Assembly (NCBI GenBank): GCA_904063045.1
Contig: CAJFCJ010000021.1
Location: forward strand, 558,001-622,000
Source: Dimorphilus gyrociliatus
Taxonomy: Eukaryota > Animalia > Annelida
Direction: 5' to 3'
DNA: 64,000 nt
The notes under the pieces are model-generated. The model did not search any database, was not told the DNA's origin, and saw nothing but the letters and a program-made list of their open reading frames with translations. Below, in pieces: positions 1 to 10,270 of the stretch. Position 1 is the first letter of the stretch, and every line of letters begins with the position of its first letter. Position numbers and translations under genes: made by a program.

Positions 1-274
1 ATTTTAACCTCTAGCCAATATTCACGAACATTGTAGTGACGTTTCAATTCATCTCTGATGGCGTATAACGTTCATTTTAAGCTGCGATTATAAAGGTACC
101 ACGCGAAATATATCCAAACCTGTATGTATAATTGAAATTTCCTTCATGAAAATTGCGCAAAAAATCCCTAAATTCTCCTTTAGAGTGTTGCCTAGAATCA
201 TCTCCAGCATTCTGCCTATCTTGAGCATTCCAATCATCACTGAAAAAGACTCCTGGATCATCGAAACCTTCCAT
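1..274 (-). CDS. MCM5: DNA replication licensing factor MCM5, 5' end only (exon 1 274-120, exon 2 from 54 running off the window)
   Basis: Starts MEGFDDPGVFFSD (human MCM5 MSGFDDPGIFYSD). A GT-AG intron at 119-55 joins NFNYTYR to DELKRHYNVREYWLEVK (human YRDELKRHYNLGEYWIEV). Confidence 0.95.
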
Positions 275-293
275 CTTAGCGTCGTTCAGTCAA

Positions 294-319
294 TTTGGCG
301 CGTAAAACGATCACGTGAC
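294..319. promoter_or_regulatory. E2F site (TTTGGCGC, 294-301) plus E-box (ATCACGTGAC, 310-319) just upstream of the MCM5 ATG
   Basis: Exact TTTSSCGC match 20 bp from the start codon. MCM genes are established E2F targets. The palindromic CACGTG core is seen directly. Confidence 0.6.
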
Positions 320-590
320 TCGTAGCGAATGATAACTTTAGAATAGGCCCGCGGAAATTTAAAAATATGTTATAAAAACGGTCCTTCTTATTTTGTATAT
401 ATTTCAGAAAGATAGAATAACAAATTGACTATTATAATTTATTGCAAACAATCAGATGAATATAACAAGAAAATATACGAGATATTTCAACAATATTCAT
501 CACAGACTTACTTTCGGGGACGGAATTCGCTCAAAAAATTCAACTACAAAATATAAACAAAATAGTAACGTTCTAAAAGATCATTTTTCA

Positions 591-3500
591 TTAGAATAAA
601 CCAACGTATTCGGTTTTCTCTTGTTTAAAATTAAATTCCTTTACTTTAAGGTTTACACTTTCTAAATATTCATCAATAAATCCGTCGATATCTGGCCGAT
701 AGTTGCTTCTTTCACCACTCATAGAAACGTATTGCGATCCGTTATAAAACCATCCATCGGGTAATGGTTCTTTTGATTTTTGGGATTGAATCTTTTCAAT
801 TTCAGTTGCGGATAGAGAATCTCTTTTCTTTAGATCCCTCAGAAGGGGTTTCTTAGACTTATTTGTCTTTTCCAACCATTCTTTCAAGAACTTTAACTGC
901 ACATCTCCAACTGTTAAGAATATTAGATATGAAGATCCTTTTCTATTCTGTTTGATGGAATTAAAATATCCTCCGGAAGGACAAACTTCAATTTCATTTA
1001 ATTCACCGGAAGCTAATAAATAAATAAGAGCGAAAATAAAATATCAACAATATATCTTATTCTGTTTTGGAAAAGTGAAAAAAAAAGATAATAATATCTT
1101 TTCTCACCAGAAAATCTAACAAAGCCGTAAATGTACACTATTTTCTGTAAATCGGATATCTTAGTTTGAGATAGAGCTGTTTGGGGACAATAATAAGGAA
1201 AAGGATTAAGACTAATGATTGTGGCAAAATATATAAGAAGATTCTGACCAATAAATCCATTATAGAATAATCTTTCGTCAAAACATCCTTTATTAGATAT
1301 ATTGACTAATTTCTCAGAAAATCCGAGTAGAGATGTTCGATAAGTTTGATAAAAACGGATAAAATGATCTATTTCTTCACCATTTCCCACAGTGAAAACA
1401 GTATCAACGAATTTGTTACCGCTAACAATACCTTCAGGTCCAGTCATAAAGACAGCGTTAGCATTCATTGCTCTTATCATCTTTTGTATTTCCAAGTTTT
1501 TATCTAATGCGTATGAAGATGGTGTTGTCCATATAATTGTTGTTGAAAGTCGAATATTATTTTGTAAATTCGGAGATAATTCCTTTGTTTCTTTATTTGG
1601 AAAAACCGTTGAAGCATTGACGCAAGTGGTAATCGATCCTAAAAATTGTTTAAATTATGTAAATTTACAAACAAAACAAAATAAACAGTAATAAATTAAT
1701 GCATTTTACCAATTTGAATATTTTCGTTCTTTAATTTATTAATAATCTGTAAGAGATTAGCGTTAATTGGAAGGGCTAGTATAGAATTTCCTTTTATGCT
1801 TGTATATTTTTGATAAATTTTATCGTAATTAGTTTGCTCTGGACACCAAAGTTGCTCATCAGCTATCAAAGCTACATCTCTGAAAAAAAAACATTTGTAA
1901 ATTAAATTTATCAGAAAACATAGAAGGGTAGGGAAATTATTTAAAATTCTTAGTATAGGATACACTAATATTATTATATTGAGTATATATTTATCTATAT
2001 ATATGTATACAGTGTAATGTATCCCATATTGGTGGCAGAATCATGACCGTTCTTAACCTGTCATTGATATTACTTCTGAGACAGTCAAAGAATTGCCTGG
2101 TAAATGACCCAAGAGTTGAACAGACGATGTGCGTCGTATGATCTAGATTTTGGACGGCTGTACGGTAACCCGCAGTTGCCCCAGAGTCGTTTTCGTCATT
2201 TTGTTTGATTTTAAAGTAGCAGTTTCTGTCATAATCTTTCATAAACCTAGTTTTTTTTATGAGAAAATTTAGAAATAATAAAAAAGTCATAAAAGTAAAC
2301 ATTAAAAGAACACTTAACCTATTAAAGTTGGTTGCATTTTGGGAAAATTTCTTCAAAGTTGTATTTTGCCATTGTTTAAGGAATTCTCGATTTCTTTCGC
2401 AATTTTCATATCTATAGGGGTTAAAAAGAGGTCTAATTGAGTTGTTAAATATGTAAATTTGTAGAATATACATTTCCCCAACGGCTTTTGGTAGTTCTGA
2501 TGCCACTTTCAATTCAACCTTGTCGTTTTCTTTCCACAATGGAAGAATTTTTGAAAAAAAATGACTTGATAAGATCCTAGAAGTTTGATCACTCCTTGAA
2601 TCTATCCAAAGAACTAGCATGCACTCGTTGTTTGACAAACAAAGTGGTATGTAATCCCATGCTAGCCGACGAAGTCGGAAGCAAATAACCAGGGGTTCCT
2701 CTATCGATTGCTGGGGGGAGGGGAAAGTTGATAGTTGTTTTTTTCAAAAGCAAAAAGAGAAAAAAAAGCGGCAATAAAAAGTTTTTTTTAGCTACTATTA
2801 TTACTTGAAAGAAATAAAAACACTATATTTCTGAGCTGTAATTTTACTAATTTCTAGTTAGTAGTTAATTATTTACCCGATCATAAATTATCTTTTGCCA
2901 AACAACATCATCCAAAAGTAAAACGGGAGCCAGATGACAGTGTTCGAATGATAAACCTCTTTCATAAAAAGCTACTTTAACTTCATTAAAGTAGGCCAGT
3001 GTACCCGGGACAAAGATGCTTGATGTTCCCTCAGCCAACCTCTTTCCAAATAGAGCGTGGCGGACGTCCTCAGCATCACCCTCGACCTAATAAAGTTCAA
3101 CAGGTTAGAGAACTGGTTATCGGACGAACGGGGCGGTGACCCTGGTGACCTCGATTACGGGTTAAACCGGGGACAAAGAAAGACGAAGCCGACACCCCTA
3201 CTTACATCTAAGTATACATCTGCTGCCATCCTAGGTAGGAGGGTCGACGTCAGTGGGTTGGAAATAAAAATGGAATCGCCATAGGTCAATGAGCCAATTA
3301 TTTCACCTTCTTCATTTTGTATGTCGTAGATGGCAACCATTAAAGAAAGTACATTAGACCTTTCTAATCGGCACCAAACTTCTGAATTTGATGCGCAATG
3401 TCGAATTAGCGGCCTTGACACGTGAAATTTGTCCAAGTATCTGGGAATTTCTTTCAAACAATGAGCCTTTAATTGAGAAGGATTCGATGCGAAATCTGAC

Positions 3501-6500
3501 GCTTGCTCCAAAATAGTTCTTACAGCACTCCTAAGTGATGTGTATATCCTTTGGAGTCGTCGAATAGTTTCGTCATTTTCAGATATCGTCCTCTCGGTCA
3601 AAGACTCTTTCTTTGTATTACCTGTAACAATATTTTTATTAGAAGAGAGCACATATTTTTCATATAAAAATGAAACACGACGAATGTGAATAAACTTTAG
3701 AAATAAAGAAACAAAGTACAAACTCTACATGTCTTGGAATACATAACCAATTAGGCCCATTCGGCAAAGTTTTGCAAACAAAAAAGCACAGACTAGCACA
3801 GTTGTTACCTAGAGGCTTAAAAATATCACTTTGTTTTGAAAATAAAAGATAAATATATATAGCGAAACTGGAATAAAGAAACTAAATGAAGTCCGTTTTC
3901 GTGTTTATTGTAATCTGTATAGTAAGCTCTTACGAATTCTATACAGTTGATGATATTAGGTATTGATATTGATTGACGCTTTTCAATATGTTTATAAGTT
4001 GTTATAATACTTCTCTTTTACATCTGATGTTTTTTCAGCGATGATAGACTTAAAGACTTTTTTAGGACATACGACAAAACCAAATTGCCTACTAATAATA
4101 CAACAAACGTTCGGTTAAGCATGAAAATACTGGATCTTGAAATTGATCAAGATAAATCCGTAAGAATTTTATTAAATCGAAACACAATTCTTAATTTACA
4201 GAATAATAATGATGAATTTCAAATAGGCAATATCCTTACTAATGTATTTGAGAGTCCGCTGGAAAGAGCCGAGATTAAAAACCCTAATTAAATCGTATCC
4301 TATTTACTTCCGTAACGAATCAATACCTAATCAAGATAAGAAGATTTATCATTTGTTATGGCATCCTGACTTTTTTATTGCCAACTCTTATGGGGATCAT
4401 CTCGTACCAAGTTTAAATGTTGAAGGGAATATATTTTTTTCTATGCAAGAAAATACCGAAGTTACTCTATCTGTCCCGTAAGTTTAACTAACAATTGAAT
4501 TCTAACAGAAAAAGCTTTGTTAAATTATCTTATTCTTTAATAGGATTTCCACAAAGATTCCTTGTCCCAAAACTGGATTATCTTATGGTTCTAATATAAT
4601 TTGTAACGTACGATTCACTAGCTGTAAGTAAGCTGCCCAAGAGATGGCGCAAACTTACAAAAAGAAAGAAAAACTTAATAATATTGCTCTTTTGTTTTGA
4701 TATTTTTTCCAGACAAGCATAATAAAGGTGATGTGAAATTTATACCAAGTGCAGAACAACCTATAAGTTTTAAGAAGGATTTAGAACTCACAAAAAATTT
4801 AAAATTGGAATCGTATCAAACTTCAGCTATATGTAGAAAATCGCAGTTTCCATGCACAGATTTAAAAATTTCATTTAAACCGTCGTGGATGAGATCTGAA
4901 TATCAACAAGCCTATACTATAGGAGTATTTACAGTTATAGCCTCTTGGATTGGATTTTGGTTAGAGAAGGATAGAGATAGAATACTTTTATCAACACTTT
5001 TAGTAACAAGTTTACAAATATACAAAGTTGGATTTACTTTATCATGCCACGGAAAAGTAAAAATCTTCCTAATAGAAATTTTACTTATCTATATTTATAC
5101 AATTAACTTATTTCTTTACTATTAATCAATTTTTTGTCTTTTTTCCCTTTTATTTAGATTGGAGAGAAGGCAATTGAATTATGGCTGTCAATTTGCATAA
5201 TTTTTATACTTTTAACAATTTTTCAATTCGCTATTGTTCGAATTTTAATTGAAAAAATTCCAAATACTATAAAATCTTTTAAAAGAAGCGACAAAGATTT
5301 GGTAACTAAATTTTAATAGTGATATTTTTTTGTTAAGTATTGGTAACATCTTTCTTAAACAGGCCTATTTTCCGCCTGCTTCGTCTTTGGAAAGAATAGC
5401 AGTAGCAATTGACACTTTTTGCGGTTTAATTCTATTCCCTTTAGGTTTTATAATAATTAATGTCATTGAGTGGCCGACAGTTAGGTCTATTTAGAGATGT
5501 GCAACTTATATTGTAGATTATAGAGAATGTTTGTACAGTATTAGTTAAATAGTAAACACTCACCATTTATTTTTAAACAACCATTTCTTGTGAAAAGAGT
5601 CCTTGCAAAGACGAAACCTGATTTTGGTTCAGTGGCGCAGCATATGATATGACCTGCTATATCTCCATTAATCCCAGTATTTTCTAAAGTGCAAGAAGAC
5701 TCCATCCAATGTTGACGACTAATTAAAGGTTTCAAAGTGGTCTTTGCCGTATTTGAACCGAATAAACAAAATGGTTTGAGTCGTTGTTCAAGCTTTGCTT
5801 TCGTTTCCGTTGGATATTTTCTCATATAATGATTATAATAAGATAGAAGAGGCTAAATTATATAGAGAATATACAGTATATTATTGTTATGATCTATCAT
5901 GTTTCAATTATAATACAAAGATGATTGAGCAACAACCTCGCATATTTCTGTTTCATTCAGATCCTTTGGTTTAGATAAATATCTTTTCAAGTTTTGAATA
6001 ACTTCTTCCCAATGACGCTCAAACAAAGCGAAATCCTATTTAATACGATAAATTAAGTTATAAATTTTTACATGAACGACATTATATTACATTAATAAGG
6101 AGTTTTTCAAGACCGTAACAATCCATCAATTCAATGAGATCAAGAGTTTGCGATGGTGTGATAAATTTGACCTATTTTTTCAATTTCAGAGAATATATAA
6201 TGTAAATCAAAATAATTGAATAACAAAGTTTGAGTATTTAATTAGTTACCTCGTGTTGGAGAGTAAAGAATCCACCACTATAAACATAGAAAAATTTACA
6301 CATTGTATTATAAAATTCTTGGAATTATGTTTAAACTTACGCATTAAAATCTTCTAGAGCGAAAGCTTGAATTAATGGCCATTTTTCTATGTCCATTTTT
6401 CCTATTTTACTGTTAGAGTTGGTTGTTAAAATGCCAACTCTTTTCGTTGGTTTTATCATTTTAATAAAACAACGAATTTTATAATCTTCACCAACTTCTT

Positions 6501-7208
6501 GATCATACTAGTTTGAATTTTTAAAGTTTATAAACTATTACTTGTTTTTATGTAAAATTACTTCAATACCTTATTATTATTAATACAATACAATTCTAAA
6601 TTGTCCCAATTTGCGAAGACATTTAAAAAGAAATTATAATTTAAAGGATTGCAATAGAAATGAACATTGTCCTTATTTATCAATAAAACTACATCTTCTA
6701 ATATTTCATCTTCAGTATTGTATCTATAAATACATTACATATTTATGCATTACATTGTATATGTACCATTTAAACGTTATATCACTTACTTTTCAGTATC
6801 TTTACCGATAGTTTCTAATATATCGAAAAATATATAGTTCAATAGTTTCATACTACCATCATGATGCCAGCTATCTACGCCTATTGAAAAGAATTGCTTT
6901 TGTTTACTTTTTAATCACATAATTTCAACATTCTGTTTAAACAATTTTCTTTTTATAATTATTTTTTAACCTCCTATTGCTAATATTCCATCAATAGATT
7001 CATCTTTCTCTATAAAATGTTGAACATTCCTTAGGCGAGTTAAACTGTATGAAGAAAATAATTTTGCTGTATTTAAAACGCAGTAAAACAGATTGAATTT
7101 TAAAGGATATAAATATTTATATTCTGCTTACTGTCCAATTGAAGTTAAGCAATCGCTTTTTATCAAAGATTTATAAGAAATCTGTTGCTTTCCTCTTTTC
7201 TTTGACAT
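591..7208 (-). CDS. DNAAF9: Dynein axonemal assembly factor 9 (C20orf194/Shulin homologue), multi-exon
   Basis: Start MSKKRGKQQ at 7208. Successive minus-strand exons read LTRLRNVQHF..DGILAIG, GVDSWHHDG..LLNYIFF, LEDVVLLINKDNVHFYCNPLNY, YDQEVGEDYKIRCF, EKWPLIQAFALE, GGFFTLQHE, FALFERHW, PFCLFGSN..GHIICCATEPK..FARTLF, LMVAIYDI..GSLTYGDS, and finally EPLPDGWFYNGSQYVSMSGERSNYRP. These are collinear with recalled human C20orf194 motifs (EKWPIVQAFALE; LPAGYFYNGTQFV). Stop at 591-593. Internal exon boundaries were only partly resolved. Confidence 0.85.
3622..5563 (-). other. Single large (1942 nt) DNAAF9 intron hosting a nested antisense gene
   Basis: Donor G|gtgagt at 5564/5563 and acceptor ttacag|GT at 3622/3621 give an in-frame phase-1 join (KING-NTKKES). 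The other DNAAF9 introns examined are mostly well under 200 nt. Confidence 0.8.
3886..5494 (+). CDS. Divergent pentameric (Cys-loop) ligand-gated ion channel subunit, GlyR/GluCl-like architecture, 381 aa, nested in the DNAAF9 intron
   Basis: Seven exons: 3886-3959, 4039-4159, 4227-4477, 4544-4623, 4713-5056, 5158-5301, 5363-5494. All introns are GT-AG and phase-compatible (1146 nt total). Signal peptide MKSVFVFIVICIVSS; YDKTKLP; MYLRVRWKEPRL; LWHPDFFIANS (loop A); C-x12-C loop; M1 VIASWIGFWL; M3 KAIELWLSICIIF; M4 IDTFCGLILFPLGF..NVIEW. Confidence 0.85.
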
Positions 7209-8342
7209 TCTTAAATTTGTTTACATCGCTACAGAATTAGGCCTATTCTTTTGAAAACTAGTTCTATTAGCCGCATAAATTTTACGACATTAATATGGTA
7301 TCCCATTCAAAAATTTAAACAAAATGTTATATAGGTTGAAAAAATACTGATAAGACAAAAACTTGATAATATTAAGATTACAAGCTGCTTTGTTTTAAAA
7401 ATAAATGGAAATATATCTACCTTTTTAGATAAGCTTATACTTTAAGTAAAGCAAAATCTTTACTTTTCTTTTAACATTTTGGGCAACGAAACGATTTTGA
7501 TTTTTGAAATTCTTTTAAATCGATAAAAAGTTAACTGAAACCTAATCGTCTTTTTAAGGCTACTTTTGGATAGTAATCCTAGATAACGGACACATCCTTA
7601 CTATTAATATTAGAATACTGAAGTTGAGTTGGGGAAGAGCTTTCTCTAAAACTTCTATTAGTTTCGTGCCAAGAGAAGAAGAGAAAAATTTAAGGATAAA
7701 GGAGAGTAATTTTGTTTAGAACCTTATAATTTTGGAATAAATCAAGAGAGAAATAACTGAGATTCGTTTGAAAATGAAACCTCGAAAGAGTATACTTACT
7801 TATATTGTATGCTAAACCTAGGTCTAAATCTCTAAGTCTACATTCTTTGCCTTAAAAAACTTATTAATTAGTATTTTTGCATCTATGAAATTATAAACTA
7901 TATTTTATTGTTTTTTATTACTTAAGCATGCTTATTCTTAGTTAAGCACAACATAACAAATAGTTCTTACTTAGAGTTAATATTTTTACGACACTTTAGA
8001 CTGGTTTGTGTCGTTAAAATAAAACATAAGAAGTAAGCTTCAATCAGTCGTAGTGAGTTTAGAATGAGAATTTATTACTTGTATTTACATAAATTGCAAT
8101 TTATCTTTTTGCAAATTTACCTATTTTTTAATTAAATCGCTAAATACAGGCACTATTTTTAAAATTCCTCAACAGTAATCAATAATTTTAAGACATTCAT
8201 GAACGATAATTTGTTAAATTGCAATTTTTAGACCATGTGGTTTTTTAGTGAGGCCTATTTTTTTGTAACTCAAAAATTCTAATTTATTCATTAATTGTCA
8301 GGATGCTCTTCGCGCAATAAATCAGTTTTACGTCGGCAAAAT

Positions 8343-10270
8343 ATGAAGTATGTTCTTGTAACGGGAGGTGTCATTAGTGGCATAGGGAAGGGTGTAATTT
8401 CTTCTTCAATTGGAACTCTACTAAAAACTCATGGAGTTAAAGTTACTTCAATAAAAATAGACCCTTACATAAATATTGATGCTGGAACATTCTCTCCCTA
8501 TGAACACGGAGAAGTATTCGTTTTGGACGACGGAGGAGAAGTTGATCTTGATCTTGGAAATTACGAGAGATTCTTAGACATAACACTACATAGAGACAAT
8601 AATATAACAACAGGCAAAATTTATGAGTATGTAATTAAAAAGGAAAGAAAAGGGGATTACCTTGGAAAAACTGTTCAAGTAGTACCACACGTGACAGATG
8701 CAATCCAAGAATGGATAGAGCGTGTTGCAAAAATTCCTGTCGATGTTAATGACCCTTCTGAACCTCAAGCTTGCCTTATCGAATTAGGTGGAACTATAGG
8801 CGATATAGAGGGTATGCCTTTTATTGAAGCTCTTAGACAATTTCAAAGGCGAGTTGGCAAAGAAAATTTCTGTGTAGTTCATGTCAGTTTAGTACCAGAA
8901 CCAAAAGCGACGGGGGAACAAAAAACGAAACCCACACAAACAAGTGTAAGACAACTGAGAAGTTTGGGTCTTACTCCTGATTTAATAATTGCTAGGTGCG
9001 GAGGACCTATAAATGATTCTACAAAATGTAAAATATCATCATTCTGTGATATAGAAGATGATTGTGTCATTGGTTTACCCGACGTGTCATCAGTGTACAA
9101 AGTTCCTCCGTTGATGGAAGACTCAAATCTTGTTGAATATTTTGCGAAAAGATTGAATTTACCTTTAAAGCGTAACAGACGTGCCTTGTTACGCTGGCGA
9201 GGACTTGGTAGTAATCAGGAAAGAGCATTGGAAGAAGTATGTATAGCTCTTGTGGGAAAATATACCAAATTAGAAGATTCCTATGCAAGTGTGATAAAAT
9301 CTTTGAGGCATTCTGCCATGAAAATCAATAGAAAACTCAAAATTCAGTATATATTTATTTATTTATTTATCCTTTAATAAGAATGTTTTTTAGTTATATA
9401 GAGGCTGACAAGTTAGAGAGCCAAGAAAATGATCCTGTTAAATATCACGAAGCTTGGCAACAGTTATGTAGATCGGACGGAGTATTAGTTCCTGGTGGAT
9501 TTGGTATGAGAGGTTTAGAAGGTAAAATATTAGCCGCAAACTGGGCAAGAACGAATTCAAAACCATACCTAGGAGTTTGCCTCGGTTTGCAATGCGCTGT
9601 TATAGAATTTGCTCGCAATGTTTTAAAATGGGATGATGCAAATACAACAGAGGTAAATCCAAACACAAATCATCCAGTTGTTATTGAAATGCCAGAACAC
9701 AATACTGGAATGGTGAGTATATCTACTAGTTAAATGAAAATAACGTTCCTCCTACCACTTACAATAATAATAATCAGTTTGCGTATATTTATTCATTTAG
9801 CTTGGTGGAACAATGAGACTTGGTAAAAGACGTACAAATTTTACAACTAACAAATCAATTGTCAGGAAACTATATCATGACAAAGAATACGTTGAGGAAA
9901 GACATAGGCATAGATATGAAGTTAATCCGGAAGTTGTTCAAGATTTAGAAAATAGTGGCTTGAAATTCATTGGCAGATCTACTGATGGAGAAAGAATGGA
10001 AATTTTAGAATTGGAAAATCATCCTTTTTACATTGCTGTCCAATATCATCCTGAATATATATCTCGTCCTCTCAATCCTTCACCACCGTATTTAGGCCTA
10101 CTTCTTGCTTCATCTGGAAAGTTAGATAGCTATTTAAATTCTGACTGGGAGCCTTCTCCAAGGTCTGGCTGTTAATCTTCTTTTATATGTTTTACATAAT
10201 TATTCATATTAAAACCTCTGTGCTTGTTATCTACAGATGCACTGACTCCAGTGACCTCTCCGATGAGTAA
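8343..10270 (+). CDS. CTPS: CTP synthase
   Basis: [18 protein letters not shown]-loop, [13 protein letters not shown], and glutaminase triad GVCLGLQ / YHPEY. Exons 8343-9346, 9394-9712, 9801-10162 (or to the stop at 10175), plus a probable terminal mini-exon 10237-10270. The 3' end is uncertain. Confidence 0.97.

Follow-up and report, generated by a model that had tools for sequence, protein, structure and literature searches.

A DNAAF9 gene of the annelid Dimorphilus gyrociliatus raises a simple question: why does a gene whose introns are otherwise short carry one of 1942 nt, and what does that intron contain? We analysed the locus in a window of 64,000 nt, which is AT-rich (GC about 30%) and belongs to a genome published as 73.8 Mb in size with a median intron of 66 bp (PMC7854359). 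Shulin of Tetrahymena and human DNAAF9 bind and inhibit outer-arm dynein during its delivery to cilia (10.1101/2020.09.04.282897; PMC12700831), and a dynein-packaging role is assumed here, by homology, for DNAAF9 of D. gyrociliatus. The window was compared with a related species represented by Logan contigs (L012-L014; runs SRR23372216, SRR23372228, SRR23372229 and SRR23372232), which are 66-77% identical to it in DNA. The splice models of the two genes described below are based on the sequence, its conservation and the continuity of the domains.

The host gene was modelled on the minus strand from an ATG at 7208 to a TAA at 591 (591-7208), with 16 exons and 3390 nt. The number of exons becomes 17 if the interval 2412-2471 is spliced, and the length of the product is about 1109-1129 codons. 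The additional exon is probable, given that 2412-2471 is bounded by GT-AG and free of stop codons, and that the relative has a stop codon there. Intron 9 (3622-5563, minus strand, phase 1) alone exceeds 178 nt; the remaining 15 introns measure 87, 90, 66, 62, 63, 78, 55, 84, 119, 166, 60, 72, 178, 71 and 95 nt (range 55-178 nt). Its donor (AATG/GTGAGT, after 5564) and its acceptor (TTACAG, before 3621) were read directly on the minus strand, and the orthologous intron of the relative (L014:7506-9780), which is 2275 nt long, has kept the GT and the AG. The statement of the first-pass annotation that this is the only long intron of the gene is thus borne out.

The same annotation had named the host as the ciliary dynein assembly factor DNAAF9, and this agrees with its domains, since DAAF9_N, DAAF9 and DAAF9_2 follow each other in family order, collinear on the minus strand and on both sides of intron 9. 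DAAF9_N matched exons 2-5, with E-values down to 1.5e-16 and another of 9e-14. DAAF9 (PF25203) matched exon 9 (5564-5852, minus strand; 96 codons plus 1 nt) with its positions 47-126 of 501, at an E-value of 2.2e-6 here and 1.6e-5 in the relative, and exon 11 with its positions 315-374, at 0.26 here and 0.04 in the relative. DAAF9_2 matched exon 15 (E 3.9e-6), for which a PDB search gave nothing relevant. Exon 10 (3206-3621, minus strand; 138 codons plus 2 nt), which lies between the two DAAF9 matches, had neither a Pfam match in either species nor a relevant PDB match, yet its phase fits that of exon 9 and it is 70% identical in amino acids to its counterpart in the relative. Compared with the DNAAF9/Shulin family, the host thus has the same three domains in the same order and differs by its central DAAF9 part, corresponding to exon 10, which is too divergent to score. 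The split of the DAAF9 domain across intron 9 in both species, together with the matching phases of exons 9 and 10, argues strongly that the exons on either side of this intron belong to one gene. Furthermore, the minus-strand open frames within 3622-5563 matched no family, DAAF9 included, so intron 9 appears to hide no additional DNAAF9 exons. The host is thus DNAAF9 by its domains, and a single-copy gene. All its exons are collinear in the relative, and its dN/dS is 0.14 over 643 codons. Protein word searches with exons 9 and 10 retrieved genomic read-through ORFs from the relative alone, and no product of a spliced transcript. Elsewhere in the genome, a second match to PF25203, on contig C336, was rejected as a chance match unrelated to the DNAAF9 locus.

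Two of the short introns deserve a word of caution. The intervals 2412-2471 (60 nt) and 2247-2318 (72 nt), both on the minus strand, are in-frame introns whose lengths are multiples of three and which are free of stop codons, with the result that an ORF at 1991-2638 reads through both of them; in the relative, the counterpart of 2412-2471 contains a stop codon. Such introns are a hazard for annotation, which would add 20-44 false residues to the protein.

Another intron of the host was unusual in a different respect. Intron 10 (3087-3205, minus strand), a GC-rich stretch of 119 nt, is 88% identical to its counterpart in the relative (L014:10200-10320), as against 64-84% for the exons of the DNAAF9 locus and 31-54% for its other introns, and has no second copy in the genome. 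Since the two species differ by a 2-nt indel, this intron is not coding. No Rfam or tRNA match was found for this intron, and its folding energy was no better than that of shuffled sequence. In a consensus fold in the sense of the host, all 29 pairs were kept, and one compensatory change was seen. Inspection by eye shows AGGTCA-nnn-GGGTCA at 3137-3151, which resembles a nuclear-receptor site of the DR3 type; both species have kept its half-sites but not the same 3-nt spacer. Intron 10 may act as an enhancer or give rise to an RNA as yet unknown.

The plus strand of intron 9 provides the answer to the question of its content. A gene model of seven exons, extending from 3886 to 5494, could be assembled there with GT-AG at all junctions and consistent phases, giving a coding sequence of 1146 nt (381 codons and a TAG) interrupted by introns of 79, 67, 66, 89, 101 and 61 nt. 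This coding sequence lies wholly inside one host intron and on the opposite strand (3886-5494 on the plus strand, within 3622-5563 on the minus strand), and its span of 1609 nt represents 83% of the intron. Exon 1 (3886-3959) starts with the ATG, encodes a hydrophobic leader resembling a signal peptide and ends in phase 2. Exon 2 (4039-4159) would encode the N-terminal part of an extracellular domain and exon 3 (4227-4477) the core of a ligand-binding domain, with W-x-x-P-R-L and W-x-P-D motifs. Exon 4 (4544-4623) contains, as read from its translation, a Cys-loop with 12 spacer residues and no FPxD. The end of the extracellular domain and the predicted helices M1 and M2 are assigned to exon 5 (4713-5056), M3 and the start of a short M3-M4 loop to exon 6 (5158-5301), and M4, followed by the stop codon (5492-5494), to exon 7 (5363-5494). 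These assignments agree with the hydropathy of the exons: beside the hydrophobic N-terminus in exon 1, hydrophobic segments number two in exon 5 and one each in exons 6 and 7, and none was detected in exons 2-4. The first-pass annotation had described an intron almost filled by an antisense gene of 7 exons and 381 codons, with a signal peptide and four transmembrane helices, and each element of this description was recovered. Scans of positions 1-9000 of the window for Rfam families and tRNAs found nothing.

Whether the host intron is empty or filled in related species, a point raised by the first-pass annotation, could be checked in the relative, where it is filled. On the 17-kb contig L014, a gene for CTP synthase is followed by a full DNAAF9 ortholog, with all 16 exons collinear, and by an MCM gene; the ortholog of the guest lies antisense between exons 9 and 10 of DNAAF9, and exon 10 comes directly after the nested gene. 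Since the same layout was present in three independent Logan assemblies of the relative, it is not the product of a misassembly. The neighbouring genes are also found in the window, where a CTP synthase gene occupies 8295-10175 (plus strand) and an MCM-family gene, at 77-274 (minus strand), starts at 274 and runs off the window; the order CTP synthase, DNAAF9, MCM is common to both.

The guest ortholog of the relative consists of seven exons, with GT-AG at all introns, and encodes 379 codons. Exons 2-7 have identical lengths in the two species, and exon 1 is 6 nt shorter in the relative (68 nt), with the same phase and again a hydrophobic leader. All 12 pairs of splice dinucleotides of the guest are kept in both species, and in a MAFFT alignment exons 2-6 contained no gap columns, as opposed to every intron. 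The amino-acid identity amounts to 40% for exon 2 (121 nt in both species, dN/dS 0.20) and reaches 83% for exon 3. Over 353 aligned codons, the dN/dS ratio of the guest was 0.19 (Nei-Gojobori; bootstrap 0.13-0.28) with a dS of about 1.1, and the differences at the three codon positions numbered 94, 48 and 138. Across the guest and DNAAF9, dS between the species is about 1.1-1.35. Purifying selection on the guest is thus about as strong as that on DNAAF9. Because the relative has the same exon lengths, the same GT-AG sites and a dN/dS of 0.19, the guest is, on this comparison, a complete and real gene under purifying selection.

To which family this gene belongs was examined by searches run exon by exon. 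All single-exon family matches were below the curated cut-off of Pfam: raw ORFs and exact exons alike yielded sub-threshold matches to ligand-gated ion channels (LGIC), and profiles built from the two species and compared with PDB were needed. For exon 3, the top Pfam family was Neur_chan_LBD (positions 48-95, E 0.055), and all 20 of its PDB matches were glycine receptors, the best being GlyR beta (E 4e-4). The two-species profile of exon 5 matched residues 165-255 of GlyR alpha-3, from beta8 to M1 (E 0.005), and 25 of its 28 PDB matches were Cys-loop receptors. Exon 6 matched positions 55-95 of the Pfam family Neur_chan_memb (E 0.047) and, as a profile, M3 of GlyR alpha-1 (E 2.4e-4) and of GluCl (E 0.0015). 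The top matches of the exon 7 profile were the C-terminal M4 of GABA rho-1 (E 0.13) and of GlyR beta (E 0.96).

Within the genome itself, exons 3 (37% identity) and 5 (26%) matched, in order, the same genuine LGIC locus on contig C5, which is itself a strong match to the ligand-binding domain family; the nearest paralog of exon 5 is at C5:1951124-1951423. No paralog of the guest closer than this locus, that is, above 37% identity, was found in its own genome. When exon 5 was compared with 1.84 billion representative proteins in a full HMMER search, three matches were obtained at E ≤0.001, namely a 75%-identical fragment from the relative, a GluCl-like protein (27%) and a repetitive protein; no ortholog beyond one relative was thus found among these representatives. 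The guest, which is fast-evolving, was found here in the genome of D. gyrociliatus and in one relative alone. For the Neur_chan_LBD family, the same genome yields at least 172 six-frame matches, of which many stand in tandem clusters (e.g. C2:1489755-1492141, C5:4061496-4064585 and C6:3028102-3036884), which is a large repertoire of ligand-gated channels for a genome of 78 Mb.

These matches, weak but collinear, indicate that the guest is a very divergent subunit of the Cys-loop/pentameric ligand-gated ion channel (pLGIC) superfamily, closest to the glycine/GABA-A/GluCl branch. With the anionic Cys-loop receptors (GlyR alpha and beta, GluCl and GABA-A; PDB 7tu9, 9boy, 1vry, 3rhw and 8op9) it shares a plan consisting of a leader, an exodomain and four helices, and the core of the ligand-binding domain, pre-M1/M1, M3 and M4 are collinear. 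A ligand-binding domain of the Neur_chan_LBD type is indicated by the matches of exon 3, and the four hydrophobic segments stand in the order M1-M4; among these, M1, M3 and M4 align to GlyR, GluCl and GABA receptors, and M2 was placed by position alone. The signature disulfide loop of the family (C-x13-C with FPxD) is, however, replaced in both species by C-x12-C without FPxD. Moreover, the guest has a Gly in M1 where the family has a Pro, an Asp directly before the Arg of M2 where anion channels have Pro-Ala, and an M3-M4 loop of just about 30 residues. All of these peculiarities (C-x12-C, the Gly of M1, the pre-M2 Asp and the short M3-M4 loop) are kept in the relative. The C-x13-C loop is what gave the eukaryotic 'Cys-loop' receptors their name, and prokaryotic pLGICs do not have it. 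Membership of the guest in the pLGICs may therefore stand without a canonical loop. Its channel function could be altered or lost, since the loop has 12 spacer residues and no FPxD and the Pro of M1 is a Gly. The first-pass annotation had called the guest an ion-channel gene; this finds support as a family assignment, from weak but collinear exon matches and with a non-canonical Cys-loop, and the function remains putative.

On either side, the guest is separated from the host exons by short gaps. Between host exon 10 and the ATG of the guest lie 264 nt (3622-3885, read on the plus strand), presumed to contain its promoter and 5' UTR, which are about 59% identical to the relative, as introns are. 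At the other end, host exon 9 follows the stop codon after a gap of just 69 nt (5495-5563). Neither AATAAA nor ATTAAA is present in this gap; an AGTAAA at 5551, 13 nt before host exon 9, is the sole variant signal, and the next canonical poly(A) signal is located inside exon 9. With so short a gap, and with no canonical poly(A) signal in it, the 3' UTR of the guest probably overlaps host exon 9 in antisense in D. gyrociliatus, and the strictly intronic part of the guest is then probably its coding sequence alone. In the relative, 475 nt with several canonical poly(A) signals separate the guest stop from host exon 9 (L013:3654-4128); the tight abutment is thus not conserved. This difference of about 400 nt makes up most of the difference between the host introns (1942 versus 2275 nt), and all canonical signals are absent from the gap of D. 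gyrociliatus.

All this is best explained if DNAAF9 and the guest are an ordinary nested-gene pair, which would need no regulatory coupling; from the sequence evidence, we consider this very probable. The host intron would be long simply because it accommodates a second, independent transcription unit on the opposite strand. The guest would have its own promoter within the 264 nt preceding its ATG, its mRNA would end in or just past the 69-nt gap, overlapping host exon 9 in antisense, and its protein would assemble into a ligand-gated channel, while transcription of the DNAAF9 pre-mRNA would pass across the guest and splicing would join 5564 to 3621. We considered the possibility that the host is in fact two genes, an N-terminal gene with DAAF9_N and a downstream gene, in which case the channel gene would be intergenic. 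The lack of any Pfam or PDB match for exon 10 would fit this view. Yet, PF25203 is split in both species, with positions 47-126 before and 315-374 after the interval, and DAAF9_2 follows; exon 9 runs stop-free into a strong donor, exon 10 begins at a phase-matching acceptor with no upstream ATG context, and the relative has kept both of these sites. The overall length of about 1109-1129 codons, presumably close to that of human DNAAF9, also speaks against two genes, which we hold to be very improbable. Alternatively, the plus-strand model might be a decaying pseudogene or a chance chain of ORFs, as could be thought from the weakness of its family matches, its non-canonical Cys-loop and M1, and the three matches in 1.84 billion representative proteins. 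Neither decay nor chance would be expected to leave an intact frame of 381 and 379 codons in two species, the dN/dS of 0.19 and the distribution over codon positions (94, 48 and 138) reported above, exons 2-6 free of alignment gaps and 12 conserved pairs of splice dinucleotides, and the probability of this alternative appears close to negligible.

It could also be that the nesting is functional, the two genes being coupled by their antisense arrangement. They might then be co-expressed in ciliated cells, or exclude each other by way of transcriptional interference or of the antisense overlap with exon 9. The nesting has indeed been kept in the relative at a dS of about 1.1-1.35, an RNA overlap with host exon 9 is likely in D. 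gyrociliatus, given the 69 nt and the absence of a canonical poly(A) signal, and interference between nested genes has been documented elsewhere (PMC3192792). A kept nesting is, however, what one would expect by default, since a precise rearrangement would be required to part the genes; furthermore, the relative, with its 475 nt and its canonical poly(A) signals, has not kept the tight abutment, and the flanks of the guest are no better conserved than introns. Such coupling is thus unlikely. Its most specific version, in which the nested pair has been conserved as an antisense regulatory unit, the guest transcript extends into exon 9, and one gene, by being transcribed, gates the other, strikes us as decidedly unlikely. 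If true, it would connect ciliated cells, which depend on DNAAF9, with an orphan channel of the ligand-gated type whose Cys-loop is shortened and whose pore mouth is acidic. Shared expression and mutual exclusion had been put forward by the first-pass annotation as inference, and none of our results favours them; apart from physical position, nothing speaks for a link of the channel with ciliary function.

As an ordinary nested pair, DNAAF9 and its guest have many counterparts, nested antisense genes being common in animals. Intronic genes represent about 6% of Drosophila genes, among them 2mit, which is antisense in intron 11 of timeless2 (PMC3786989); LRRTM genes are nested in introns of alpha-catenin genes (PMC3933685), and transcriptional interference has been documented for some nested genes (PMC3192792). 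The DNAAF9 pair resembles 2mit/timeless2 and LRRTM/alpha-catenin in that a complete coding gene of opposite strand occupies a single intron and is kept between species, and differs from them in the families of host and guest. It also stands apart from these examples by its compact genome, by a guest that fills 83% of the intron and by a 3' end that probably reaches a host exon. It is nonetheless another instance of a known arrangement, and the nesting adds nothing new on nested genes.

The main value of the finding is for annotation. ORF-based or otherwise careless gene calling would miss or fragment the seven-exon guest, and could split DNAAF9 in two or read through its two stop-free in-frame introns; in this compact genome, a single long intron is a useful hint that a gene lies hidden in it. 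As a putative fast-evolving subunit of the channel family with unusual residues in its gating loop and at its pore mouth, the guest itself may be of interest to channel biologists.
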